This document shows positions 7,298 to 61,237 of a DNA stretch of 64,000 bases, piece after piece; position 1 is the stretch's first letter, and every line of letters starts with the position of its first letter. This DNA comes from Podarcis erhardii (Eukaryota). The stretch lies in NCBI GenBank assembly GCA_964252035.1, contig OZ176212.1. One strand, written 5' to 3'. The translations under genes and the position numbers were made by a program. The notes below the pieces were generated by a model. That model did no database searches, had not been told where the DNA came from, and was given only the letters and a program-made list of their open reading frames with translations.

Positions 7298-8422
7298 ATG
7301 GAGCCATCTCACAGGTGGCATGTCGACAGGGGTGATGGGCATCCAGCGGAGCTGCAGGCAAAGGCTCGGGTGCTGGTGCCAGGCGGGAGTAGTTGGCCAC
7401 GAGCGGAAAACCATGGCAGCGTCGGGCTTGAAAACCAGGTGATAGAAACCTGCCCCCCAGTTCCTTGGGCTCACTATATGCAGACCCCACTCAGCAATGA
7501 CAGCCCCCAGAACCACACGGCCCTAGAGGACAGGCCTTCTCATCCCGAGATCTACAGCATTGCCCTGTGGGGGCCCAAACTGCATTCGGCGCTGACCAGG
7601 CACAGAGGGGGGCGGTCCAATGCACAGGCCTCCCCTCCGGCCTCCAAGCATCTTGATCCGCCAGGAGAGGGAGACGCTGCAGACGAAGGGTCCATGGTGT
7701 TGATTGATGCTGAAGGGGTGCCCCACACTGTGTCCCGCCAAGAGGTCGAGCAGGCTGGGCAGATGCAATCCTCTGAGCCCGAGCTATTGGCATCAGCCCC
7801 GCCGCCCCGGCAGCTGTACTTCTGCCCCATTTGCCTACGGACGTTCCTGTACCAGTCGGACCTGGAGCGCCACAGCATCACCCATTCGGAGAGCAAGCCG
7901 TACGTGTGCCGCGAGTGCGGCAAGGCTTTCAAGCGCTCCTCGCACCTTCAGAGGCACAAGCACATCCACACCGGCGAACGGCCCTTCAGTTGCCCGGTCT
8001 GCCGCAAGGGCTTCCGGGAATCCGGGGAGCTCCTGCGCCACCAGCGAGTCCATACCGGGGAGAAGCCGTACCAGTGCCAGATCTGCCGGTTGCGCTTCAC
8101 GGAGCGCAACACCCTCCGCCGACACGCCAAGCGCAAGCATGCCCGTGAGACCTACTACCAGCGCTCCGTCGAGGAGGGAGGCGGCAGCTGGACAACGGCA
8201 GGAGACTGGGAATCGGAAGTGGTGGCGGGAAGCGGTGACTGGGGGCCAGAGGAACTTGGGAGTGGCTGGACCAACGAATCAGTGGAGGACTGGGTCGGGG
8301 ATGGGAGCCACTGGGGAGAAGCTGCAGAAGGCGGGGCAGGAAGCACTCCGGTAGCTATGTCACAGATACCAGAGACAGAACACAGCAAGGACAAAGACAA
8401 GCCTGGGATCCAGCCCTCATAA
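7298..8422 (+). CDS. ZNF524: Zinc finger protein 524: four C2H2 fingers preceded by a VLIDAEGVPHTV motif; single coding exon
   Basis: Fingers CPICLRTFLYQSDLERHSITH ... CRLRFTERNTLRRHAKRKH match ZNF524 as recalled; acceptor tctccgcag at 7255; expected syntenic position. The true start may be Met 7478 (MQTP..., resembling human MDTP...). Confidence 0.88.
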   Translation: MEPSHRWHVDRGDGHPAELQAKARVLVPGGSSWPRAENHGSVGLENQVIETCPPVPWAHYMQTPLSNDSPQNHTALEDRPSHPEIYSIALWGPKLHSALTRHRGGRSNAQASPPASKHLDPPGEGDAADEGSMVLIDAEGVPHTVSRQEVEQAGQMQSSEPELLASAPPPRQLYFCPICLRTFLYQSDLERHSITHSESKPYVCRECGKAFKRSSHLQRHKHIHTGERPFSCPVCRKGFRESGELLRHQRVHTGEKPYQCQICRLRFTERNTLRRHAKRKHARETYYQRSVEEGGGSWTTAGDWESEVVAGSGDWGPEELGSGWTNESVEDWVGDGSHWGEAAEGGAGSTPVAMSQIPETEHSKDKDKPGIQPS

Positions 8423-21885: not shown

Positions 21886-22094
21886 AATTCATTTTAACAA
21901 CTGGCAACTTTTTCTTTTTTTAAATCAGAAAATTCTTGACCCATCCCATTGTGTAAATGGAACATATCAGATTTATTTTTTTTAATGGAGCCACCACAAC
22001 AAAGAGTGCTGGTGTCCTGGATATGTCTGGCATGTGTCTACATTGGTATCCCGTTTCTCTCCTTTGTCTAGGCAGTGCCCCCTCCCGGGTGGAG

Positions 22095-25034
22095 ATGGAA
22101 GCCAATGCAGCAAGCGACGAGGGTGTGCATTTCCAGAGCTACCCCTTCGACTTCTTGGAGTTCCTGAACCACCAACGCTTTGAACCTATGGAGGCCTACA
22201 ACCACGAGCACGCCAAAGCAGTCGCCGCCCTCCCCTGCCCACAGCCACAGTACGACTACACCCAGCCGCCCGCTGCCGCCCCACCTGCCCACTTTGACCG
22301 TGTCCCCACCGCCGTTGGCACCTCCAAGCCCAAAGCTGAAGGCCCATCCTCCTCCTCTTCCTCGGCTGCCTCTTCTGCCAACGTTCAAGTCAAGAAAGCC
22401 GAACCGGGGGCTCCTGCACCACCACAGCAGCAACAACAGCAGCAGCAACAACAACAGCAACAGCAACCACCCTATACTGGTCCAGCAGTGGTGCCAGCAA
22501 CAGGCCAGCCTCTCTTCGATAGTACAGCAGCGGCTGCAGCCGCTGCCGCTGCCTACAACACTCCTCAGTGGGGCATTGTGGACCTTTCTGGCCACCAGCA
22601 CCTCTTCAGCAGCCTGAAACGTGGGCAGGCCCCGCCCCCAGCTACAGCCACTGTTGCTACTGACAGCCAGGCGGGCAAAGACGACAAGAACTACTTCCGG
22701 CGCTTGAAATATTTCATCGACCGCCGTTTCCCGTGCGGCGTGTGCCAGAAATCCTTCAAGCAGTCGTCCCACCTTGTGCAACACATGTTGGTACATACCG
22801 GCGAGCGGCCCTACGAGTGCACCACCTGCGGCCGCACCTACAACCACATTTCCAGCCTCATCCGGCACCGCCGCTGCCACAAGGACACCGAGGATGCCAC
22901 GGCGGCTGCCAACGCGGCTGCTGCTAACGCAGCCGCGGCAGCAGCCGCTGCTGCAGCCGCTGCCGCAGCTGTTGCCACCAACGCAACTGCTGCTTCTGGT
23001 GCCGAGGGAGCAGCTCAGCCTCCTACTCAGAGCGGCAACCCTCAGGTGGTTCCCGCATCCGCTGGGACGGCAGCCGCCTCCGCCCTCAGTGCTGCCATCG
23101 CTCAGGCTGAAGGCCCGTTCACCTGCTCTCTCTGCTGGAAGGTGTTCAAGAAACCAAGCCACCTGCACCAGCACCAGATCATCCACACGGGCGAGAAGCC
23201 GTTCTCATGCTCCGTCTGCCAGAAGAGCTTCAACCGACGCGAGAGCCTAAAGCGGCACGTGCGGACCCACTCGGATCTCCTGCGAGTGCAGTGCGGGGTT
23301 TGCGGCAAGGAGTTCCGGGACGCTTCCTACCTTCTGAAGCACCAGGCTACCCACGCGCCACCCGGAACCTTGCCGCCACGCCCCGAGTACAAGTGCGACA
23401 TCTGTGGCAAGGGCTATGTGGCTCCCCAGAACCTCCTGCGCCATCGGCAGCTGCAGCACGAGGGAGCCCAGCTGCCCAAGGATGGCACCAACGCCCTGTC
23501 CTACCTGCCGCCGGGAGCTTATCTCCTCCCACAAGACCCGCAGGCGACCGGTTCTGACGGCGACACCAAGCCCACATCCTACGGGCTCTTGGGTCACCCG
23601 CTGCTGGTGGGGACGGCAGCGGGCAAGAACTTTTGCTGCGGGATCTGCGGCCGCGGCTTTGGGCGCCGGGAGACGCTGAAGCGCCACGAGAGGATCCACA
23701 CCGGGGAGAAGCCTCACCAGTGCGCCGTGTGTGGAAAACGCTTCCGCGAGTCATTCCACCTCAGCAAACACCACGTGGTGCACACGCGGGAGAGGCCCTA
23801 CAAGTGCGAGATCTGTGGGAAGGTGTTTGGCTACCCGCAGAGCTTGACCCGCCACAAGCAGATCCACCGGCTGCAGCTGCCTTGCTCTTTGCCACCCATG
23901 GGGCCCTCGCTGGCACCCATGGGTCCTTCGCTGCCGCCGCCTCCCGAAGGGCTGACCTACGGCTGCTCTGACTGTGGAGAGCGCTTCCCCGATCTCTTCC
24001 ACGTCATGAGCCACAAGGAAGTTCACGTGGCCGAGAAGCCATACCCGTGTGACGTCTGCGGCAAGTGCTTTGGCTTCATTGAGAATCTCATGTGGCACAA
24101 GCTGGTTCACCAGGCTGCCCCCGAGCGGCTCCTGCCACCGGACGAGACGGCCGCAGCGGTGGCGCCTCTGGAGAACGGACTGGCCAGTGGCGACAACATG
24201 ACGTCTTTCGAAGACCACCACCCCACCTTGCCCAGCGGGGAGCGCTTTTCCTGCTCCATCTGCGGCCAGACCTTCAAGCATTTCCTGGGCCTTGTGACCC
24301 ACAAGTACGTTCACCTGGTGCGGCGCACGCTGGCCTGTTCAGTCTGCGGGCAGAGCTTCGCGGGGGCCTATGACCTGCTGCTGCACCGCCGCACCCACCT
24401 GCAGAAGCGGCACTTCTCCTGCCCGGTGTGCGGCAAGCGGTTCTGGGAGGCCGCCCTCCTGATGCGCCACCAGCGCTGCCACACCGAGGAGCGCCCTTAC
24501 CGCTGCACGGTCTGCGGGCGCGGCTTCCTGCGCTCCTGGTACCTGCGCCAGCACAAAGTGGTGCACACCGGCGAGCGGGCCTACAAGTGCGCTCTCTGCA
24601 ACAAGCGCTTTGCCCAGTCGTCCAGCCTGGCCGAGCACCAGCGCCTCCATGTGGTGGCTCGGCCCCAGCGCTGCCCCACCTGCGGCAAGACCTTCCGCTA
24701 CCGCAGCAACCTTCTGGAGCACCAGCGGGTGCACCTGGGCGAGAAGGTCTACCGCTGCGACCGCTGCTCCAAGAGCTTCTTCTACCTGTCCTCCATCCTG
24801 CGCCACCAGCGCTCCCACGATGCCAAGCGCGAGCTGCGATGCGGGGCCTGCCTCAAGCTCTTCAAAGACCCCAAGTACTTCAGCAAACACGTCCAGGCCC
24901 ACCAGGGAGGGCGGCCGTTTAAGTGCAGCACCTGTGGAGAAGCCTTCTCCAACACCTATGGCCTCAAGAAACACCGCCACATCCACAAGATGGAGCGCTT
25001 TGCCGCCATGGGAGGCCACAAGGAGCAAGCCTAG
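22095..25034 (+). CDS. ZNF865: Zinc finger protein 865, 979 aa, 20 C2H2 fingers, polyQ and polyA tracts; single coding exon
   Basis: N-terminus MEAN...GVHFQSYPFDFLEFLNHQRFEPME matches ZNF865 as recalled. Acceptor tttgtctag at 22070-22071 puts the ORF-track start (21957) in the intron. 20 C2H2 motifs counted by eye. Confidence 0.95.
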   Translation: MEANAASDEGVHFQSYPFDFLEFLNHQRFEPMEAYNHEHAKAVAALPCPQPQYDYTQPPAAAPPAHFDRVPTAVGTSKPKAEGPSSSSSSAASSANVQVKKAEPGAPAPPQQQQQQQQQQQQQQPPYTGPAVVPATGQPLFDSTAAAAAAAAAYNTPQWGIVDLSGHQHLFSSLKRGQAPPPATATVATDSQAGKDDKNYFRRLKYFIDRRFPCGVCQKSFKQSSHLVQHMLVHTGERPYECTTCGRTYNHISSLIRHRRCHKDTEDATAAANAAAANAAAAAAAAAAAAAAVATNATAASGAEGAAQPPTQSGNPQVVPASAGTAAASALSAAIAQAEGPFTCSLCWKVFKKPSHLHQHQIIHTGEKPFSCSVCQKSFNRRESLKRHVRTHSDLLRVQCGVCGKEFRDASYLLKHQATHAPPGTLPPRPEYKCDICGKGYVAPQNLLRHRQLQHEGAQLPKDGTNALSYLPPGAYLLPQDPQATGSDGDTKPTSYGLLGHPLLVGTAAGKNFCCGICGRGFGRRETLKRHERIHTGEKPHQCAVCGKRFRESFHLSKHHVVHTRERPYKCEICGKVFGYPQSLTRHKQIHRLQLPCSLPPMGPSLAPMGPSLPPPPEGLTYGCSDCGERFPDLFHVMSHKEVHVAEKPYPCDVCGKCFGFIENLMWHKLVHQAAPERLLPPDETAAAVAPLENGLASGDNMTSFEDHHPTLPSGERFSCSICGQTFKHFLGLVTHKYVHLVRRTLACSVCGQSFAGAYDLLLHRRTHLQKRHFSCPVCGKRFWEAALLMRHQRCHTEERPYRCTVCGRGFLRSWYLRQHKVVHTGERAYKCALCNKRFAQSSSLAEHQRLHVVARPQRCPTCGKTFRYRSNLLEHQRVHLGEKVYRCDRCSKSFFYLSSILRHQRSHDAKRELRCGACLKLFKDPKYFSKHVQAHQGGRPFKCSTCGEAFSNTYGLKKHRHIHKMERFAAMGGHKEQA

Positions 25035-29470: not shown

Positions 29471-32289
29471 AGAATTGGAAAGCGTATGTCCCATGCATTG
29501 AGGGGGCTCCAGATTTGCTTGTTTTGCTAACTGTTGGTGTGGAGGGAGCTTCACTTTAAGAATCCCAAGTAGCTAGACCACTGAAGTGTTGGGACTATGT
29601 AAAGGGCAGAAGAACATGAGGGCTTGTAGATCCCAAACAACTGCAGCAAAAAAAGGAGATGGATACCCACAGTGGCTAGTATCAGGTTATCAGAGCTTGA
29701 AACTTTGATATGAGCTGGGCTGTGGGAAGAGCAGAATCCTATACCCAGCCGCAGGAGAAAGATCAAGGTGGGTTTGCCAGAAATCTTGCACAGTCTTCTA
29801 TTAGAAGAGGTTTTCTGCCGTCCTGGGGTCCCACCTTCCTCCTTTAGCCAATCAGGGCAGTGGGTAGGGCTTTCTTACTCTTAAGTGAGGTGCCTCGGCT
29901 ACATGAGCCACAGCTCTCCAACAAGTTGGTATGAAGAAGTACGCAAGGCTTGGTGGAATCTCACTGAGATTTAAAAAGAATGTTGAGGTCATCCCTAGAA
30001 ATCAAACATTCGGAAGCAAACTGTTGAGTACCAGCATTTCCAACTCTTCTCTGCCAGTTTCGTATAGGCTACTGGAGATGGAGAAGGCTCGGATGATCCT
30101 TGGAAGCAAACTTGCTGGCAATTTCAACATTGCAGTTTTACACACATTCAAGTGTTGCTGTTGAAATTGATTTTTTTTGTTAAGTCCTAAGGCATTAACA
30201 AGACAAGTATCGGCATACCAAGTAGGATGCTTTTCTCTCCCTTTTTGCATTTCAGGAACAGAGCATTCCAATGGTATCTAGAAGCTGGGTGAATTTAAAT
30301 CAGAATGTTAAACTTTGCAAGCAAATAAAGCGAGGAAGAATTGGTTTTGAGAAACCTTTCCTCCTTCCTTCTTAACTTTACAGGGGAACTGCTTAATGCC
30401 AGATCAAGGTGTTTGTTCATGTAGCCCAGGGCGGCCCAACTTTTCAAACCAAGTAGGCCGCAGGAGTACTTGGACAAGGAACCCATGGACCACAAACTTT
30501 GAGAAGGCAGCGCAAGACCCAGTGGGGAGGGGCATATGTTGCTGAGGGCCATCAAAAACGGTATTGAGGGTTGTGCATTGGACCACCCTGGTGTAGCCTG
30601 TGTTGTCTCCTTTGACTACTAGCAGCAGTTTTCCAGAACCCTCAGGCGAAAAGACTTTCCTCACTTGCTATCCAATCCTTTCACACTAAGATGTCAGTAA
30701 CTGAACCTGGGACCTCTGTGCAAAGTCTCTGCTCTACCACTTGAGCTAGGTTCAATTTTGGCTCATCCCTACGAGGATGGGCAAGTTGGAGAAGCTGGAG
30801 AGCATCTGGCCCAGAAGACTGCGTTTGGCTCTTGCTTCCTTTTTTCTTTTCCTATTATGTATGTGGAAGGGTCCTGGATTAACACCAGGTAAATCTACAT
30901 GATCTTGTGTGACAGACATTTCTGTGATGCTCCATTTTGAAGGAGATACTTAAAATATATCTGCTATCACAAATGGAGCCTAAACACTATGAAGAACATT
31001 GACAATTTAAAGTGGAGGCAAGTAATACTTCCAACATGGAATTTTTTTCTCTTGTGAAATTGGTACAATGCACCCAGCTCAGACAATGAAGCAAAAGTGC
31101 TGCATACAGGAAATGGCTGTTAAAACTCACCCCTGGGAGGAGACCACGTAAACTTCAAATGTTTATACTGCAAGATCTGCCATGAGAAATGCAGAACTGA
31201 GAATGCCTAGTCTCAGGGAAAAGCTAGAAAACAAAAGAATTCATAAAGTGTTTGATGTGCAATAGAGGTCTAAACTGATGATAATATTTGGAATGGATAT
31301 TTAAGGTAGCTGTTTAGTGGAACTATCTTTGGTAACAGCAAGTAGCCTGAGAGGTTGGTTCAACAATTTTTTCTACCTAAATTTTTCCATTGGGGTTATA
31401 TGCAAATTCAACTATGTTTAACAAAATATTTTTTAACTGGCTAGTGCTTGCAAAGCAAAATGTCAAGAATAATTTGGTTTAAAACGTGGCTACAACAACT
31501 TTTCAGAAGATTTTATTTCTACCTTTGGATTTCTGCTTACAACTTTTACAAGACCGGGGGACCTTTCTTCTAAAGACCTTTTCCCCAACTTCTTGTAACA
31601 TGAACAAATCTTGTTTTTCATCTTCTTTATTTACTTATAGCTTTTTTCAAATGCATTTTAAAAAATCATTTCAGATTTGCCCTCCTGAGGGTAAAAACAC
31701 ACATTATAAATTGTGGGTTATGATCGCTATGAACAGGACCATGCATCTGCTTTTTTAAAAAAGCAACAACAACCCAATACTGCATCAGTATACCTAGTGT
31801 TGGTATCTATTAGTACAATCCTATGTCTACTCAGAAGTAAGTCTAATGAGTTCATTGGGCTTTCTTCCAAGAAAACGGATATAGGATTACAGCCCAAACC
31901 ATCTGCACTCTAGCAATTGTGTAATTACACAAATGAAGTAAATGATAACTTGCTTATTTCATATAATACCATTTTTCTTCTGCTAGCAGTGGGAAGGGGC
32001 AGACACCTGTACAAGGCACTGGTTTCTAGAAGTGCTCAGCTACTCCTTGCCCCAATTTCAGAAATGTTACCGACCGTTAGCCATGCACTTTAGGCCTCTC
32101 TCTTCATTAGTTTGGTTCAGATGTAATGCCCAAACCAAGAAAAGTAGTAAGATTTGGTTCACAGGTAATTGCAAACAAACAAACAAACAAAAAGAGCTGC
32201 AAGATCCTAGCCCTCAAGCCTATGGCTACATTTAGATGGAATGCCAAACCACACTTTACATAATCAAGCCTTTAGACTTACTAATACAG

Positions 32290-32365: not shown

Positions 32366-32599
32366 CTTTATCAAAGTTATTTTTCCTTAGGCACTGGTGT
32401 GTGTTGTCTTGAACCTATACACTATTTAATATACCTATTCCAGTACGATTTTAAATAAGAATAGAAGAAATAATAATGATTTTTTTAAAAGATGACGAGA
32501 TGGGCTTCCAGGCAGACTGGAGCTCCAACGGGGAGGAGACAGGAGCCTGTCCCAACAGAGCAGAGCAGAAGCAAATGTTGCCTCCCGCCGCACTCAGAA

Positions 32600-33700
32600 G
32601 TCGGAGGATACGGAGCTGCAGTTTGGACAGCAGCAGTTTCTTCCTTGCAAGGGAGCCCCAGCGGCACTGCGGGCGCGGGTGGCCACGATGTCCTGCTGGG
32701 GTCCCGAGCTGCTGCAGTTGCTCCCGGGGAGGGGGCTATGCGCCAAGTCCTCCGGCCCGGAGAAAGCCGATGTGTTGGCGTGAGGAGGGGGGCGGTGTTT
32801 CGTAGCCAGGCTGCCGCAGCCAAGTTGCTGGCAGGCTCCCACTTTGCTCCAGCCGCCCAGATGCCGGCGCGGTCCTCTTCGGGGTGGGAGGCGCCCCTGC
32901 TTTGCAGTGTGGCACACCGCCCGCCCGCCAGGCTCCCTCCACCCCACTCTGTGCAGCTGAACCGGCAGCAGCTTCGCCTCTCCCAGCCCAGCCGGGGCGC
33001 GCCGCCTGCGGCAGGACCTGCGTCGGGTCCCCGCTCTCCACTCGCCTCCGCTGTTCCCTTCCCCGCCTGCCGGCCCCGCTACTTACCCACCAGGGCGACC
33101 CCCAGCCAGCCCCTGGCCCCGCCGCCCGCGCCCCCGGCCATCTCCTCGCTAGCTGCAGCGCCGCAGTGGCCTCTTCTTGCAGCCCGAGCGAGTGAGCGAG
33201 CGGCGTCCCAAGCATGGCTCTCGCTCCCTGCCCTCCCTGCCAGCCTCCGCGGCTCCTTCGGGCTCCAAAAGTTGCCCCGCGTGCGACCTGCCCCCTCGAG
33301 CAGCCGCGCCTGGGAGCCTCTGAAGGGCGGGGGCAGCCGGCTCCGAGCTCGGCTTCACGGGACCGCCTCCTCTGCAGCGAGCCCCGGACTGGACCAAGCG
33401 AGCAGAAAGCTTCTTTGCCCGGCCCGCGAGGCAGGCGAAAGTTGTGGGACCGGCCGGTAGGCAGCGCCGACGGGGTGCGTCGGTTGGAGCCTTGTCTGCA
33501 AACAGGCAGGGAAGGCTGTTCACATGGGTCACTTTTTAGAAAGGCAGAGAACCTCCGCCGGAGTACGGACCCTAAAATCTGGGTCGGGACCAGTAAAAAG
33601 GACGAGAAGCTCGCTTCCTCGCCCTTGATGCCACGGCCACATGACGAGGTCTGGCGTGCCGGATTCGGCCCGCGGACCTTGTGTTTGACACCCGTGTACT
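32600..33700. promoter_or_regulatory. Orphan CpG island between the 3' ends of ZNF865 and ZNF784
   Basis: Dense CpG and GC content; minus-strand GTAAGT donor at 33086-33081; not the promoter of any of the five recognised genes. Confidence 0.7.
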
Positions 33701-34530: not shown

Positions 34531-36513
34531 TCACTGTGACTTGGCACTCCATTGGTCTTTCGCCACCCCTTTACCACCAGGCCCAGCACCCTCCTGCCCA
34601 TGAAGCCGGCGATGCTTGGCAAAATTGGAAGAGTTATTGAAGCGCCGGCAGCACACGGCACATTCAAAGGGCTTCTCCCCAGTGTGCAGTCTCCGGTGAG
34701 TGGCCAGGGCTGAGCTCTGCGTGAACCTCTTGCCACAGACAGAACACCCAAAGGGCCGTTCGCCCGTGTGCACCCGCAGGTGCTCCTTCAGATCTGTGGC
34801 ACGACGGAACTGCTTGGGGCATGCAAAGCAGAGGAAAGGCTTGGAATCGAATGCTGACTGAGAGGGCTGATCATAAGGCTCAGGATCTTGGAAAGGAAAG
34901 CAAGGTGCGGAGCCGCCCTCTTCCCAGTGCTGAGTGGTGCTTCTAAACTCCTCTTGTAAGGAGCCATGACCAGGAGATGTGGAAATATCGTAAGGCAGAG
35001 AACATGGCTCAGGGCTCTCCAGTTCCCAGGGAGATACACCAGCAGGCATGTCTAAGGGAGAGCATCCTTCAAATTCCCCCCTTTCGCTTCTTGTCTCCAG
35101 ATCGGTCTCTTCCCAATCAGGACAGGACCAGACAGATACTTTTGCTGTGAAAGCATTAATCTTCCCCGGGGCACACGCTTGAAATGCCACCTCTTTCTGC
35201 TTGTTGCTGCTGCCATCTTGCCTCAGCAATCTGAAGTGGCCAGCACCATTTTGTCTGAGGTCATGGGCAGCGATTCCATGGTGGCCATTTTGTCTTGGTG
35301 CTGAGGTGCTGAGGCGCCTGCTTGGATTCAGTGCGCTGACCGGGCATTCCCCTCTGACATTCTGCTTTATGTGGGCACCAATGGTCTCCCCACTACTATG
35401 CTTTGGGCCCTTGAGGTAGTCTTCATTTGTTCTCCTTACTAAACAGCCCACAACTCCACGCTCTTGACTCAGCTTGTGGCTACCAGCTTCCAAAAGGCCT
35501 TTCCTACAACTGCCGTCGTCTAACAGTAGCTTGCTATTGTGGCTGCCGACATGATGCTTCTGTTCTCCCTGAGTGTGGCTTCCCTCTGCTCTATTTTGCC
35601 TCAGGCCTATCGTGGGATTTTCACCACCAACATATTTTTGGCGTCTGAAACTGTGGCCATTTTGCATCTGTCCCTGGCCGGTGCCACCATTTCCCCCCAG
35701 TCCACCTTTGCTATCACTTGCCTGCCTTAGACCCTTAGAATGGCTACTTTGCCTCAGTTCACGGTTAGGGCCACAACTAGCATTATCTCCCCTTAGTCTA
35801 ATTTGCTTGAAATGGTCCACATCATCACCAGGTTGCCTCAGGCTGCTATCCTGGCTAAAGCCGTTCACATAAGGGCTGTTTGGGTCATAGCCTCTCTTGT
35901 TCTCGCCTTCTCTCAGTTCTTTGACGACCTGGCAGCCATTTTGTCTGGGCGGCAGGCCGGGGCTTATACTGTAGCCACCTTGTCTTTCTGCCAGCTGGCT
36001 CAACTTCTTCTCAGGTAGGAAGGCACAGTCCTTCCCGTCGCCTGCCTTGTCGCTGTAGCCAAACGGTTGCCCGTGGATGCGCTGGTGCTTGCGGAAGTTG
36101 GAGCCGTTGTTGAAGGACTTAAAGCAGACACCACAGCGGAAGGGCCGCTCGCCAGTATGAATGCGCATGTGGCCAGAGAGCACTGAGCTCTGAGTAAAAC
36201 GCTTGCCACAGATGCCACAGCCATATGGCCTTTCGCCTGTATGTACCCGCTCATGGTCGCGTCGGTCTGAGGCCCTCTTGAAGCGCTTGGGGCAGAAGGA
36301 GCAGCTGTAAGGCCTCTCGGCAAGGAAGGACAGGGCCTCTTGGTTGCCAGGCAACCATCCCCGGGGCTCGACCAAGAGGCTTTTGCAGGCCTGGCATTGT
36401 GGAGCCTGCCCTTTGGGCCCAGCAAGACTCGGCAGCTCCTCCTGGCACAGTGGGCAGACGTGGAGCAATCCTGGAGTTGCCTCTTCTTTCACTCTAACCA
36501 GCTGGATTTCCAT
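34531..36513 (-). CDS. ZNF784: Zinc finger protein 784-like, 660 aa, two copies of the three-finger module
   Basis: MEIQLVRV resembles human LIEIQVVKV; fingers RASDRRDH / TQSSVLSGH / NNGSNFRKH match ZNF784 as recalled; syntenic and on the minus strand. Acceptor tatttccag at 36561-36559; an in-frame TGA upstream places the start at ATG 36513. Confidence 0.85.
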
Positions 36514-37099
36514 CAGCGAGTCCACACCAGCAGAATGCCTGCTTCACAGCATCTTCCCCTGGAAATAGCAGGAAAGGCAGAGATGTAAACAGAGCGGGTA
36601 TGGTGGGTGGGCAGATCAAATAGCCAGAGCTTCAATTACACAGGGAGCAGTAGAGGCCTGGTTTCCTTACCTATTGCTTTTAGAAAGCTGAAGAGATAGA
36701 TGATTCGGCTAAATCCTGAAGGAATCAGGGAATGGGGCGCTGTGAATGTACCGTAATTCACCTCTCTTCCCTAACCCAAGACACATGCTGGTTTCATTTA
36801 AGTAAATTTGTACTCAATCTTTCTATCTAAGAATCCCCAACGAGGCTAAAAGCAAAATATAAAAGCAACATCAATGTAACCAAGTTAAGCAGGCCAGTTG
36901 AGAACAATATGAAAACAAGACAGCAGCAGTTAAAATACTGAAGGAAATAAAAATCCTCCAATTAAACAAATGTCAGCTGGAATTGATCTGTCTTAAAGCA
37001 ATGGCAAAAAATTATCAGAGGAAACACCAGAAGGGTCTCCTTGGGCAGACAATTCCCCAGACTCCATGTGGCCACAGAAAGGTTCACTCTTGTGTGATC

Positions 37100-38449: not shown

Positions 38450-39100
38450 TCCTAGGCCCCTTTCGCTGGAGCCTCTGAACCAATCAAAGAGCCCAGCCCA
38501 GCGTCCCGGCTCCCGAGTCCCCCTCCTGGGCTCTTAACCCGCCCCACTCCTTCCAAGCCTGGCACCCAAGCCGCCTGCCCTCCAAATTTCACCGGCCCCC
38601 TCCCTCCCGGGCATCCTGGCTGCCAGCCAAAAGCGTCCCAACCCCATCTAGATCTCTCTCTCCCCCCCCCCCCCCCGCTGCGATCTCCGAACAGATCCCG
38701 CTCGTCCTCTTCCCTGAACAAGTCCGGCTTCTTGGCGAAGAGAACAATAGCCCGGAGCTGGGCGAGCATGGCCAAAGGGGGAGGGCAGGGGACCCGCCGA
38801 TGGCCAGGGGGCCGCGGGGAGCGCCATCAGCGGCGCCTCTGGGTTGACTTCGAGGTCCCTTTGTCCCTCCCTCTCCCCCCACCCCCGTCTGCCCCCCCCC
38901 CATTGGCACGCGAGTCCCCTACTCATCCTCGAGCATTGCACCCGGCAGCCGCTCCTGGCCGCTGGCATCCCCTCCTCCTGCTCCACAAAGGAATCCCTCA
39001 CCTGTACCTGCTCCATCCAGGCTGGTACCGGGGAAGATTCTGCAGCGCCGCCGCCGTCCCTGTGCAACTTTCCGCCTCCTTCAGGGGGAAGAAACAGTTG
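38450..39100 (-). promoter_or_regulatory. CpG island; probable ZNF784 promoter and exon 1 (minus-strand donor GAG|GTAAGA near 38450)
   Basis: GC and CpG rich; tttcttacct on the plus strand is a minus-strand donor; lies ~2 kb upstream of the ZNF784 coding exon. Confidence 0.6.
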
Positions 39101-40489
39101 GGAAAACTCCCCTCCCCCTTTTCCCTCCTCCCCATCCCGAATGCGCACCTTCCCTTTAAGTGCAACCAAAAAGGAAATTAAAGGGAGCTGGGAGATGGCC
39201 CTCGCTTTCTGTCTGCAGTCAGAAATACAAGCAATACATGACCACTCTCCCCCCCCCTCGCTCCACCTCCTTCCCCTCGTTTAAAGACACAGGCGCCCCG
39301 CTTGCAAAGTAGGGAGAATCAGAAGCTGGTTCTGTAATTTAGCTTAGTTCAAATACGCTTTATTCGCGGTGTAATAAACCAGGATGAATTAGAAAAGGGT
39401 CTGTGCTGCAAAGCACTTTTTGCGATTCCAAATGCTCCAGTTGCAGTTAAAAATCGCCTTTGCATCTTTATTCTCAAGAGAGCATAACCGCGCCCCCCCC
39501 CGTCCATATCCTGTTCTTTCAGTGGTGAACTAGATGCCAATGGGAAGACCACAAGCAAGGCATGAATGAAACAGCCCTCTCCCCTTTTGTGACTGGTATT
39601 CAGAGACTCACTGCCTCCAACACTGGATAGTAGAACACAGCCATTGTGATTAGTAGCTATCTGTAGTTTCATCCTCCACGAATTTGTCTGTCTGGGTTGG
39701 TGGCTAGCACTTCATACTGTAGGAGCAAACTCCACAGTTCAACCAGGCCTTTCTGGAATCTTCTAACCTTCTCAGGATGGCCCTGAGAGAGAGGTTTTTC
39801 CTCTCTGTCCACTTCCCCCACATCACACACAATTCCATACAACTTCCTCATGAAAAAGCAGGTTTAAAAATCTATTTCTAACATATACTATTATACCAGC
39901 ATCTCAGCTGTAACAGCTTTTATCTTTTCTCTCTAGACTGGGGAGCAGGATGTCATCGAACCAGTATGTACACCCTAAAACATATTCTGCACTGATGTCA
40001 GTTTGCTCTGAACAATTCTGTATGCAGTTTTTCAAAGGAGAATTTGCATTTCCAAGCACGCCTGCTTTCATTCCACCTCCCTTCCCCCAAAGCAAGGTTC
40101 TGGACTGCTTGGCCAATGTATGGGTCAAGCTGGGAAAATGAGCATTTACTCTATTCCTTCTTCGACCTCTGCACTCATGTTCCTCTACTGCTTTATCCTA
40201 GTAGGTTAACATACCAGCTTTTAAAACTAAAATAATAAGCATTCCAAATTCTCTGGAAATGCAAATGTTGGGTTCATAATAAAGCATGTAGCTGAGAAAG
40301 CTTATGCAAAACAAGTGAAATACTTACATTTGATTGATTTACATATTTTGAGTACTCAGCTGGCAGATTCTTGACGCATATTTGGTTTTTGTAAAAAAAA
40401 AAAATAATCATAAAAAGGATGCTATGTTCAGTGTGCATCCCACACTTCCTCCTTCAACAAAAACTCTTTAGAGAAAGCCGAGACAGACC

Positions 40490-42855: not shown

Positions 42856-43614
42856 TTACGGCGTCGGGAGGAGCTGCAGGCGGTGCTTCCGGCGGATGTG
42901 CCTCTGGAGGGTGTTGCGCTCCCCAAAGCGCATGTGGCAGGCCTCGCACTGGTAGGGCCGCTCGCCCGTGTGCACCCGCTGGTGGTGTGAGAGCTCCCCC
43001 GAGTCACGGAAGCTGCGCTGGCAAATGGGGCACTGGTGGGGCTTCCGGCCCGAGTGGGTGTACTTGTGGCGCTCCAAGTGGGACGTGCGCTTGAAGGCCT
43101 TGCCGCACGCCCGGCAGACGTGGGGCTTGCTCTCCGAGTGGGTGATGCTGTGGCGCTGCAGGTAAGACAGGTACTCAAATGTCCGCGAGCACACGGGGCA
43201 GCTGTACACCTTGCGCAAGGACCCTCCGCTCCCACCCCCTTCCGGGTCCCCTGCCGCTCCCACCCCCTCTTCCACCAGCACTGTGTACGGCAGCCCCTGG
43301 CTGTCAATCAGCAAGTAGCGCCCCAATCGGGAGGGTTCCCCTTGTTCTGTGCCTCCTGTCCCTCCAGGAACAAGTGCCCGCCTCCCTGCTCCTGGCAGCC
43401 CATTCAATCCCTGAAGGAGGGCGCTACCAGGAGAAGGCAATGGCGGGCGAGAGAGTTTAGGAGGCGATGTTTGGACACCTCCTCCCTCACCCCCCAGCTC
43501 CAGCTTGATGGGTTGTCCCACATGGCTTGCAGGCTCTTGTGGATTGAGGGGTTCCAAGGTTTCTGGTGGTCTTTGGGGGTCTCCTATAGACTTGGAATGT
43601 CTCTGCAGCTCCAT
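42856..43614 (-). CDS. ZNF581: Zinc finger protein 581(/580)-like, 252 aa, four C2H2 fingers; single coding exon
   Basis: [17 protein letters not shown] and [25 protein letters not shown] match ZNF581 as recalled. Acceptor ttattgcag at 43660-43658 places the start at ATG 43614. Confidence 0.85.
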
Positions 43615-43755
43615 AAGTATCTCCTTATGTGTATTCCCTTGGGTTGGAATGCCAAGTCTGCAATAAGAAAGAAAGCACATTAACTGGGGAAAGTGTGAGG
43701 GGGGAATCATATGGGTCACACAACTTTTAGAGCTGCAATTATGTAGGGCTGCCAG

Positions 43756-43983
43756 TAGGGCTGGGCGATATCTGGTTTTCAACACTGTGATATATCACCA
43801 GCTAAACATTGCAAAACATACTGATATATCACAATGTCTGAAATAACGATGGAGCTATATTAGCTGGCATCACAGCTTTTCCCGCATCGTGATTTTTGCA
43901 TAACGCACACACAGAGAGGATTTGTGATATACTGTCAGATCAAAAATTATGAAACGGTTATCATGATATGGACTTCAGCCCTA
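43756..43983. mobile_element. hAT MITE with perfect 8-bp TSD
   Basis: TIRs TAGGGCTG / CAGCCCTA; TSD GCTGCCAG at 43748-43755 and 43984-43991; lies ~95 nt into the intron from the ZNF581 3' splice site. Confidence 0.85.
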
Positions 43984-49325: not shown

Positions 49326-51512
49326 TTTAAAACAAAACAAAACACCCAAAGTACAAAAAAAATTCTGCTGACCTCATGGCTCCATCATCTGCTTAACTTT
49401 TGTATTTTTGGGGGTTTTTCTCATCTTACTCACCCCCTGCTTTGTATAACATCTTCCCTGTTGAAGAGTTCTAGAGAACTCAAAATCTTGCCACACTTTG
49501 TGACATGTTGGCTGATTCCATCCTTCTTATTAGATGACCAACATTAAGAAAAAATATGGCAGCAAACAGCATAGAATCAACAAGAAATTTATATTCATAA
49601 AATAAGTGCATCACAAATTGGTAGATCAGGTTAGGACATCAACAGATCTGGATCACCACTCAGGGGAAAGTTGGCTTGTACTAACTGTTCCACAGCAGAA
49701 ATTTCATGTGAATTCTACACACAAACATCCATTCTGATTACCCTGACAAAAATGCACAGATGCAGAGGGAAACACAATGGTGTAAAACAAATACACAGCT
49801 ACTCTCCCCCAACACACTTCCACACAAAGACAAGACAGTAGGTGGATGATAAAGTGGTATGTTTAGGGTGAGGCTTTTCTCTGCCACATGACTTCTCCCA
49901 CCCACTAGGATAATGACCAGGCATTGGGATCCTATTTTTAATCTTAATTATGGGTTTTGGTGTTAAAATCATGCCTGTTCCTGCACATTCTAGGCTCTGT
50001 TCTGGCATGTTGCGGCATTCTCCCCCACTCCAGACTCCCCAACATCCTTCCACAGCCATCTTTATGACATGTCTCCTCTTCCCCCGCTGCCTTGCGGGAT
50101 ATCTTTGGGAGAAGAAAAGCCGAAGGAGTAAACCTTACACAAATCCAGAGTGGAGACCCTAAGACAATTAGATGGCACCTTGTATAGCTCCTTCCAGCAA
50201 CTCCTGCAGCCAAGCTGATGCCAAATGACTTGCTCCGCTTTCCTTTGGACCACATCAGTGAGGCTGAGATGAGGGTCTTGTCATCTGGGTAGCCCAGGAC
50301 CTCCATACACGCTGCCCAGCTTGTTCCCCAGGGAGGTCACTTTTGACTTCGCCCCTTGATGTGCACTCCATTGTCTCTTGAGACAGATGCCAACCATCCA
50401 ACCTCTTCATCCTCCCTCTCAGAAATTTCTCTTTATCGGGCTGGTACTTTATGGGGTAAAGTACTCAGCCCACCCAACTACCTAGATGTTGAGAGGTACA
50501 ATTGTGGCTTGAATGGTTTATTTTGTGGGGGAGAGTGGATGAATTATAGTTATGCTCAAAGTCTAACTGCTGGTCTTGATTTTCGTGACAATTAGCTTGT
50601 GACAGTGGAGACACTGGCTCACATTTCATGTTCAGTTAAGAAATATGTTCTTATATCCAAATCCTTTTAACTGTGTTTGTGTGGGGTGTGTGTCATTTTA
50701 AAAAAAATATAATTTATTTTTGTTCTTGTTTTTATTGCGCATTCAAATTTAATAAATAAGTGATAGTTCCACCTAGGGTTGGCAACATGAAGCCCACAAA
50801 GCCTTTGTGCCTCCTTCTCACCAGCCCCTTTTGTACTGGGGTGGTTTCCTTCCCTGCTCCCCCCCCCCCCCCATTTTAAAAGCACATAGAGGTAAAGGAG
50901 GAAATTGGAAGAGGGATGCTGTTTCCTTGTTCCACCTCCTTGTGTTTTTCAAGGACTCATCTTGGCAACTGAGCAGAAAACGGGAAGGGGGGGGAGGAAA
51001 ATGGAGCATCACAGAAGGCGGGAGAAGAGAGGGGGTGACAGCGGAAGGATAGAAAATGTGAATGGAAACTTAGTCACTTCATTTTCCTGGAGAGAGAGAG
51101 AGAGAGAGAAGATGGATCCAGCAAAACAATTCCTACTGAAATTGCATTTCTTCCCTCACAGATCCCTGCCTCCCTCCCACAACTCACCATCAAATCAAAG
51201 TTCATATCTCTCCTCGGTGACTGAACCATAACCACTAGAGATTCACTGCCTTCCAGGACTGCTACGGACCTTCATCTTTATTTTTTTTACAAGGCATCCC
51301 CCTCAAAAGCACAATCAAATCACAGGTCACCTCTGTATCCACATATGTGTTCTGTTATTTATAGTCATGTGGAAAAATCATGAGGAATTGTACCTTGACG
51401 AATGTTTTTGTGGTACTAGCAAGTACTGGATCTGTATTTTATCAATGGATCAGAGGGAAGGAGGTGCTAGACACAGGTTATGGATATTATTCTGTCCTTT
51501 TATATCTTGAAA

Positions 51513-51963
51513 TATATAATACTTGAAAGTAGTGATGTATGGAAGTGAGAGCTGGACCATAAAGAAGGTTGATCGCCGAAGAATTGATGCTTTTGAATTA
51601 TGGTGCTGGAGGAGTCTCTTGAGAGTCCCATGGACTGCAAGAAGATCAAACCTCTCCATTCTTAAGGAAATCAGCCCTGAGTGCTCACTGGAAGGACAGA
51701 TCCTGAAGCTGGGGCTCCAATACTTTGGCCACCTCATGGGAAGAGAAGACTTCCTGGAAAAGACCCTGATGTTGGGAAAGATGGAGGGCACAAGGAGAAG
51801 GGGACGACAGAGGATGAGATGGTTGGTTAGTGTTCTCGAAGCTACAAGCATGGGTTTGACCAAACTGCGGGAGGCAGTGGAAGACAGAAGTGCCTGGCGT
51901 GCTCTGGTCCATGCGGTCATGAAGAGTCGGACACGACTAAACGACTAAACAACAACAACAAAA
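51513..51963 (+). mobile_element. 5'-truncated BovB (RTE) LINE
   Basis: Open frame VVMYGSESWTIKK..RRIDAFELWCWR..RVPWTARRSN...LKLGLQYFGHLM...LEKTLMLGK..G.RRRGRQRMRW is the BovB ORF C-terminus; (AAC)n tail; 11-bp repeat ATATCTTGAAA at 51502-51512 and 51964-51974. Confidence 0.95.

Positions 51964-60670: not shown

Positions 60671-61237
<567 letters not shown>

Follow-up and report, generated by a model that had tools for sequence, protein, structure and literature searches.

Two conserved, duplicated zinc finger modules in the long reptile form of ZNF784

ZNF784 is an almost unstudied transcription factor, although canonical and non-canonical motifs have been obtained for the human protein through high-throughput systematic evolution of ligands by exponential enrichment (HT-SELEX), as have motifs from chromatin immunoprecipitation (PMC8408965). 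The subject of this work is a stretch of 64,000 nucleotides (nt) from Podarcis erhardii (contig OZ176212.1 of assembly GCA_964252035.1), referred to throughout as the window, in which a gene for ZNF784 encodes two sets of three C2H2 zinc fingers, here termed module N and module C, lying far apart on a single polypeptide. A preliminary description of the same sequence, which gave the gene its name, proposed that the two sets represent an internal duplication, and that the resulting bivalent protein was a candidate DNA-looping or bridging factor. The locus raises the question of whether the second module is a genuine and maintained copy of the first, how old it is, and what a protein with two such 'hands' might do.

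Layout, resemblance and conservation of the two finger modules

Read from the first ATG, at 36513, of a minus-strand open reading frame (ORF) spanning 34531-36525, the protein is 660 amino acids (aa) long. It includes six fingers that match the canonical pattern perfectly when searched as a regular expression, arranged in two groups of three, with the C-x2-C-x12-H-x3-H zinc ligands and TGE(R/K)P linkers all intact (Table 1). A Pfam scan of the 660 aa protein, with E values up to 0.1, returned C2H2 finger families only (PF00096/PF13465-type, E = 3e-25 and 5e-31), with no KRAB (PF01352), SCAN (PF02023), BTB or homeodomain found at this threshold. The modules align without gaps over 79 aa, of which 50 are identical (63%, with 81% positives), as are 150 of the corresponding 237 nt. 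The gapless alignment of the preliminary description was thereby reproduced at the same positions, its three pairs of recognition helices could be read letter for letter, and a GQ dipeptide is indeed seen after both modules; the spacer of non-finger sequence, put there at about 410 aa, is 412 aa in length.

As C2H2 triplets all resemble one another, a control set was built from 1,210 canonical three-finger stretches of approximately 200 non-orthologous C2H2 proteins, which were themselves the closest database matches. The mean identity of these triplets was 47% to module N and 46% to module C, with maxima of 59.5% and 57%, respectively. None of the 1,210 reached 63%, and because this value lies above every control triplet, the resemblance between the two modules is specific. 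On the basis of these comparisons, modules N and C are true paralogues generated by internal duplication. The capture of module C from a neighbouring finger gene was considered as a separate origin and rejected, as identity to the modules, module C included, does not go above 49% for any of the other finger triplets encoded in the six frames of the window.

Across squamates, module N is 91-100% and module C 95-100% identical to the Podarcis copies, while identity in the linker is 35-69% outside Podarcis and 94% to Podarcis raffonei. Ratios of nonsynonymous to synonymous divergence (dN/dS), a check proposed for each module in the preliminary description, were calculated by the Nei-Gojobori method between Podarcis and genomic DNA of Rhineura, Anolis sagrei and Pseudonaja, at dS values of 0.3-1.3. 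Both modules gave 0.00-0.03 (0.02 for module C), compared to 0.33-0.43 in the linker and 0.15-0.57 in the N-terminus; judged by these ratios, purifying selection on both modules is very strong. It might be argued that module C is a copy in decay, that its likeness to module N is due to chance among C2H2 fingers or that it is an artefact of assembly, since C2H2 triplets in general share around 47% identity and the turtle copies described below are indeed decaying. Such an account is barely credible, given that the resemblance between the modules tops all of the controls, that module C has so low a dN/dS and such high conservation in squamates, and that it is 80% identical to its alligator counterpart. 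An artefact of assembly is further opposed by the presence of the same architecture in more than 25 independently assembled genomes, and by a window that includes no N.

The recognition helices of the first finger (F1) of both modules, and of the second finger (F2) of module N, are fixed in squamates. The variable helix positions are position 5 in F2 of module C and, in the third finger (F3) of module N, position 1 (G/S) and once position 4 (F/Y). When the usual base-contacting positions (-1, 2, 3 and 6) are compared, the modules differ at F1 +2 (S/T), F1 +6 (D/E), F2 +3 (V/A) and F2 +6 (G/T), with the contacts of F3 being alike. As these are fixed differences at positions that contact bases, modules N and C are likely to read related, but non-identical, target sites.

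A model produced with AlphaFold2 from a 25-sequence alignment contains six beta-beta-alpha fingers, with block-mean predicted local distance difference test (pLDDT) scores of 62-82, and 66-82 in module N; module C matches DNA-bound C2H2 arrays in the Protein Data Bank. Residues 149-556 have a pLDDT of around 29 and almost no secondary structure, the only element being one three-residue helical turn. Two intact, separately conserved finger arrays are therefore present on one polypeptide along with a disordered tether, such that the protein is, as originally suggested, architecturally bivalent with both modules maintained.

Orthology, distribution and age of the duplication

The best database match to the protein is a 660 aa protein of Podarcis raffonei, which is 96% identical and colinear. 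Full-length matches of 588-731 aa were found from every major squamate lineage, many of them named zinc finger protein 784 by NCBI (those of Anolis sagrei, Tiliqua, Candoia, Paroedura, Pseudonaja, Ahaetulla, Erythrolamprus, Pantherophis and Pogona, at 588-683 aa), and other orthologues bear arbitrary 'ZNF-like' names, such as 'ZSCAN20-like'. In Rhineura, Anolis sagrei and Pseudonaja, the orthologues are uninterrupted ORFs in genomic DNA. The sequence of the window is not identical to that of P. muralis. Its gene order, as read from the ORF list, is ZNF524-like, ZNF865-like, ZNF784, ZNF581-like and CCDC106-like. This is the order of the mammalian ZNF524-ZNF865-ZNF784-ZNF580/581-CCDC106 cluster, to which the whole window corresponds in reptiles. 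In the lizard, two turtles and an alligator, ZNF581 has the same orientation as ZNF784 and is found 3.5-6 kb upstream; a ZNF581-CCDC106-U2AF2-type order is seen in a marsupial. Judged from the names of the best matches, the gene order and the 73-77% identity of module N to placental ZNF784, the gene is the lacertid orthologue of ZNF784 in a long, reptile-type form, and the name given in the preliminary description was correct.

The mammalian proteins compared were those of non-human placentals, with one chimpanzee protein cluster from a bulk scan and no human sequence among them. The preliminary description gave human ZNF784 as about 320 aa long with one C-terminal module; the non-human placental proteins are indeed 283-332 aa long with a single module at this position, and also have three divergent N-terminal fingers that had gone unmentioned. 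The placental module has the helices RSSDMRD/QSSVLSG/NSSNFRK and is 62-66% identical to module C; the closer relationship to module N holds across 45 placental ZNF784 clusters, all at 73-77%, with the next best unrelated triplet at 59.5%. Placental and lizard ZNF784 are also alike in their EIQ-V-V N-terminus, their gene neighbourhood and their lack of KRAB, SCAN and BTB domains. By contrast, the placental protein ends approximately 30-50 aa after its module, with neither a long linker nor a module C, and keeps the three divergent N-terminal fingers where the lizard counterpart has only two CxxC pairs.

The two-module form, of 650-730 aa, was found in all sampled squamates. In Alligator sinensis, the two modules lie in a single continuous frame downstream of an assembly gap, with a linker of 285 aa between them and a fourth finger after module C; the C-type helices match those of the lizard exactly. 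Both modules are also kept in the turtles Gopherus evgoodei (L001:10034-11420) and Caretta caretta (L002:10239-11562), although in these the gene has decayed: Gopherus has a frameshift in the third finger of module N, a finger that is deleted in Caretta, the modules lie in different frames, and several zinc ligands in Caretta have been lost through His-to-Pro and Cys-to-Phe/Ser changes. The duplication hence took place before squamates, turtles and crocodilians diverged, which makes it no younger than crown reptiles. The two-module form is accordingly the standard in squamates and crocodilians, and an ancient one, rather than an oddity of the Podarcis genome. In the only bird examined, the vulture Sarcoramphus papa, the 2.4 kb gap between ZNF581 and ZNF865 (L005:11689-14088) has no ZNF784-like sequence, and from this one species it appears that birds may have lost the gene. 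Similarly, nothing resembling ZNF784 was found within 10 kb of ZNF581 in the bilby. A match in Xenopus laevis was considered as a possible ZNF784 locus and set aside, as its neighbourhood proved to be ZNF524-like and uninformative; among the matches listed for finger-containing protein queries, which are swamped by poly-finger proteins, there was no non-amniote ZNF784.

A maximum likelihood tree of the modules (LG+C20+F+G4, 79 columns) was calculated with eight outgroup triplets, arbitrarily chosen for rooting. All ZNF784 modules form one clade to the exclusion of these outgroups (support 98/97), within which one clade consists of module C (97/93) and another unites module N with the placental module (95/88). 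This topology implies that the duplication occurred before the split of mammals and reptiles, with subsequent loss in placentals. An amniote age is thus the better-supported reading suggested by the tree, although it is not proven, and it is most likely that placentals lost the linker and module C, in which case their short protein may be the derived one. The dating proposed in the preliminary description gave, from the squamates, turtles, alligator, bird and placentals compared, an age of at least crown reptiles for the two-module form. That description had also allowed that the second module might be an ancestral state already described. It is ancestral for reptiles, and neither a description of it nor any treatment of the architecture or evolution of ZNF784 was found in the best-ranked literature mentioning the gene; likewise, a literature search for a JASPAR matrix identifier for ZNF784 gave no match. 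The long reptile proteins are present in RefSeq, so the sequence itself is not new; what appears to be undescribed is the conserved second hand that arose by duplication, together with its age.

Exchange between the modules was considered separately. Between-module dS is 2.4 in Podarcis and incomputable in the other three squamates owing to saturation, and recent gene conversion in squamates was rejected on account of this saturation and of the fixed differences between the modules. In the turtles, the third fingers of both modules contain CPGCPKSF, and the between-module dS of the alligator is lower, at 0.81; it is possible that these reflect exchange between the copies or convergence through codon bias.

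Proposed mode of binding and its alternatives

The reading that is favoured, with a probability of around 0.6, is that reptile ZNF784 is a 'two-handed' factor binding paired half-sites on one DNA molecule. Both modules would act as DNA-binding domains, recognising sites of roughly 9 bp that are related but differ between the two, and the hands would grip a pair of half-sites on one DNA molecule together, a mode of binding that would be tighter and more specific than that of a single hand. The flexible linker would permit variation in the spacing and orientation of these half-sites. The reading is made by analogy with ZEB1 and ZEB2, in which N- and C-terminal finger clusters, both of which are needed, bind two separated CACCT(G) boxes, with the variable spacing and orientation of these half-sites being credited to the long linker (PMC8304685). 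Like these proteins (deltaEF1/SIP1, of the zfh-1 type), ZNF784 has two separated C2H2 clusters with a long, presumably flexible, region between them. They differ in having 4+3 fingers, as opposed to 3+3 in ZNF784, and in there being no homology beyond the finger fold. ZNF784 also lacks the homeodomain-like domain, the Smad-binding domain and the PxDLS CtBP motifs of ZEB proteins (there is no match to P.DL[ST]); as it has neither a homeodomain nor a CtBP motif, it falls outside the ZEB family, and the comparison is a mechanistic one only.

Other finger proteins offer less close parallels. Two distant finger clusters are present in MECOM/EVI1 and PRDM16, where they are not close paralogues, bind unrelated motifs and are accompanied by a PR/SET domain; in ZNF784, by contrast, the clusters are duplicates with similar helices. 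Tandem poly-zinc-finger proteins (KRAB zinc finger proteins and their relatives) share with ZNF784 canonical C2H2 fingers and TGEKP-type linkers. However, theirs is one long, unbroken array with a fast turnover, whereas the arrays of ZNF784 are short, split by 412 aa and have been near-constant for more than 200 million years.

An alternative role for the two modules, that envisaged in the preliminary description, would be to hold two distant or separate DNA segments, making the protein an architectural looping or bridging factor. The two intact and conserved finger modules are compatible with such a role, and a tether predicted to be disordered over 412 aa could reach a second duplex. Nevertheless, it is considered decidedly unlikely, as no oligomerisation or architectural domain was found in the Pfam scan, a flexible tether favours the nearest site on the same DNA, and the ZEB precedent is one of neighbouring half-sites on one DNA molecule. 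The fixed differences in base contacts also mean that the modules are not just duplicate readers of one site. In its most far-reaching form, which is more speculative again, the ancestral amniote ZNF784 would have been two-handed, with placentals having lost a hand, and the reptile protein would link two DNA sites, even when far apart or on different molecules, as a bivalent architectural protein. Were this true, the link would be made through two near-identical but offset specificities and the motif-studded 412 aa tether of a small, naturally bivalent protein, for which the one-handed mammalian orthologue would be a natural control.

Transcripts bear on whether the two hands are used together at all. 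Two Logan contigs that are skink-like in sequence, L011 and L012, both encode the same 665 aa orthologue (P0019). Identity between the two is 99.8% from a point 48 nt before the ATG onwards, and the sequences 5' of that point are unrelated; at the point of divergence, L011 has a polypyrimidine tract followed by CAG, and L012 a different sequence of 129 nt. As the break in identity falls at an acceptor, L012 is interpreted as a spliced transcript and L011 as retaining the intron. L012 holds an exon of the 5' untranslated region (UTR), the whole two-module ORF and 1.2 kb of 3' UTR. The acceptor in the window, 45 nt upstream of the ATG, occupies the same position as that in the two contigs, and the 5' exon of L012 aligns to 39031-39118 with 79% identity over 90 nt (E = 8e-14). 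The preliminary description had raised the prospect of transcripts that drop a module: the squamate contig keeps both, while an isoform without module C is predicted by NCBI in a snake.

It could therefore be envisaged that the modules work separately, either through single-module isoforms or with module C having other targets or binding RNA or protein, and with the linker providing docking through a repeated LRQNG-like motif. In line with this idea, some predicted snake isoforms are missing module C or a stretch of the linker, a database model from Pseudonaja starts within the linker and has module C as its only module, the module-specific helices are fixed, the linker motif is enriched (see below) and one module suffices in placental mammals. 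It is still judged unlikely, since full-length ORFs are colinear in all squamates and the alligator, both modules are on one spliced transcript contig, and several of the short models look like artefacts of alignment between the repeated modules. These are the models P0121 of P. muralis (200 aa), P0134 of Gopherus (238 aa), P0361 of Pseudonaja (236 aa) and the 'ZNF581' P0222 of Naja (282 aa), which join a finger of module N to a finger of module C, or ZNF581 to module C. From their structure they appear to result from alignment across the internal repeat, giving misleadingly short proteins, and database models that jump between modules or are fused with ZNF581 are not to be trusted.

A number of points weigh against the two-handed reading and the history attached to it. 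That either module binds DNA, that their sites are similar and that two sites are bound cooperatively are all predictions made from sequence. The transcript evidence comes from another squamate, and consists of the splice pattern of an assembled contig. In Pantherophis guttatus, NCBI predicts an isoform of 588 aa with a shortened linker (P0026) and one of 538 aa without module C (P0052), such that single-handed products may also exist. The decay of the gene in turtles and its absence from the syntenic position in one bird indicate that some lineages can do without the two-handed form. Finally, a duplication restricted to reptiles was not rejected by the approximately unbiased (AU) test (delta lnL 3.6, p = 0.30), on which account gain in reptiles, in place of loss in mammals, may also explain the difference.

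With regard to the structure of the corn snake models, P0026 has an in-frame deletion of approximately 75 aa in the linker, and P0052 exits the ORF around 35 codons before module C. In a reading made at the protein level only, the exit point is M-E-G-K in the snake and W-E-E-G-G in the lizard.

Other features of the gene and implications

Outside the fingers, a short (L)[RKM]Q[NDSP](G) motif (LRQNG, MQNG and LRQDG, for example) occurs nine times in the linker, between aa 190 and 435, compared to an expectation of 1.0, and none of 5,000 shuffles reached nine. The alligator linker includes the same type of motif, as GLMQDG, GLMQNG and GQRQNG. The copies may serve repeatedly in docking, or may be what is left of a tandem repeat. 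When a profile of the linker alone was compared with 1.84 billion representative proteins, only squamate proteins were found; the profile weakly and locally matches the alligator linker. In the N-terminal CxxC-x16-CxxC element, C40 and C43 are invariant and C20 and C23 at least 90% conserved across the squamate alignment, and there are no histidines within aa 20-43. To judge from its position, this element is probably what remains of the N-terminal fingers still present in placental ZNF784, and it is possibly a Cys4 zinc site. At the other end of the protein, the tail is probably the relic of a fourth finger, to judge from a common GKG..(D/E)(R/Q)W pattern; in the alligator and turtles a fourth finger (H-CALCGK[GS]FQE...) still follows module C.

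Table 1. Coordinates of features in the window, numbered from its first nucleotide
Feature	Coordinates	Strand	Basis or remarks
ZNF784 coding sequence, 660 codons and TGA stop, all in one exon	34531..36513	-	ORF list; proteins of relatives
N-terminal motif common to turtle (LEIQVVRVKEE) and placental (IEIQVVKV) ZNF784	36481..36513	-	direct reading
CxxC-x16-CxxC element (CPLC-x16-CQAC), aa 20-43	36385..36456	-	squamate alignment
Module N, three C2H2 fingers, helices RASDRRD/QSSVLSG/NGSNFRK, TGERP linkers, orthologue of the placental C-terminal module	36073..36309	-	aa 69-147
Linker, 412 aa, G/S/Q/P-rich, fast-evolving, predicted to be disordered	34837..36072	-	
Module C, three C2H2 fingers, helices RATDLKE/QSSALAT/NSSNFAK, paralogue of module N	34600..34836	-	aa 560-638
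C-terminal tail	34534..34599	-	tails compared across squamates, turtles and alligator
5' leader of coding exon, 45 nt	36514..36558	-	polypyrimidine tract and AG acceptor (36559-36560) upstream
Upstream ORF of two codons (ATG CTG TGA) in the 45 nt leader	36544-36552	-	
Probable non-coding first exon, GC-rich block, GT donors at 39007 or 39001	39008..39118	-	ends inferred
ZNF524-like ORF	7298-8422	+	resemblance
ZNF865-like ORF, 1025 aa, long poly-Q and poly-A runs	21957-25034	+	resemblance
ZNF581-like ORF	42856-43785	-	resemblance
CCDC106-like exon	60833-61237	+	resemblance

Downstream of the gene, a block at 31917-32034 and 32485-33250 is 73% identical to the 3' UTR of L012; it lies 2.5 kb past the stop codon and beyond a CpG island. 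As the match is located past the island, the latter may be part of the 3' UTR of ZNF784 or lie where that UTR ends. The only AATAAA in the 2.5 kb scanned downstream of the stop is at approximately 32425-32430. Elsewhere in the window, ORFs overlap on both strands at 51450-51948, one of which resembles the C-terminal part of a retrotransposon reverse transcriptase ORF (WCWRSLLRVPWTARRSN...), presumably a fragment of an RTE/BovB-type LINE.

As a whole, these results amount to a modest but solid comparative annotation, and not to a new kind of system. Reptile ZNF784 is twice the length of its placental orthologue, and has a second hand, conserved to the same degree as the first and dating back approximately 280 million years or more. 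The effect of tethering short finger arrays to one another is a question mostly approached through engineered proteins. The placental and reptile forms constitute a natural pair, with one hand and two hands of the same core specificity, and their comparison could serve to probe how tethering affects target choice and affinity.

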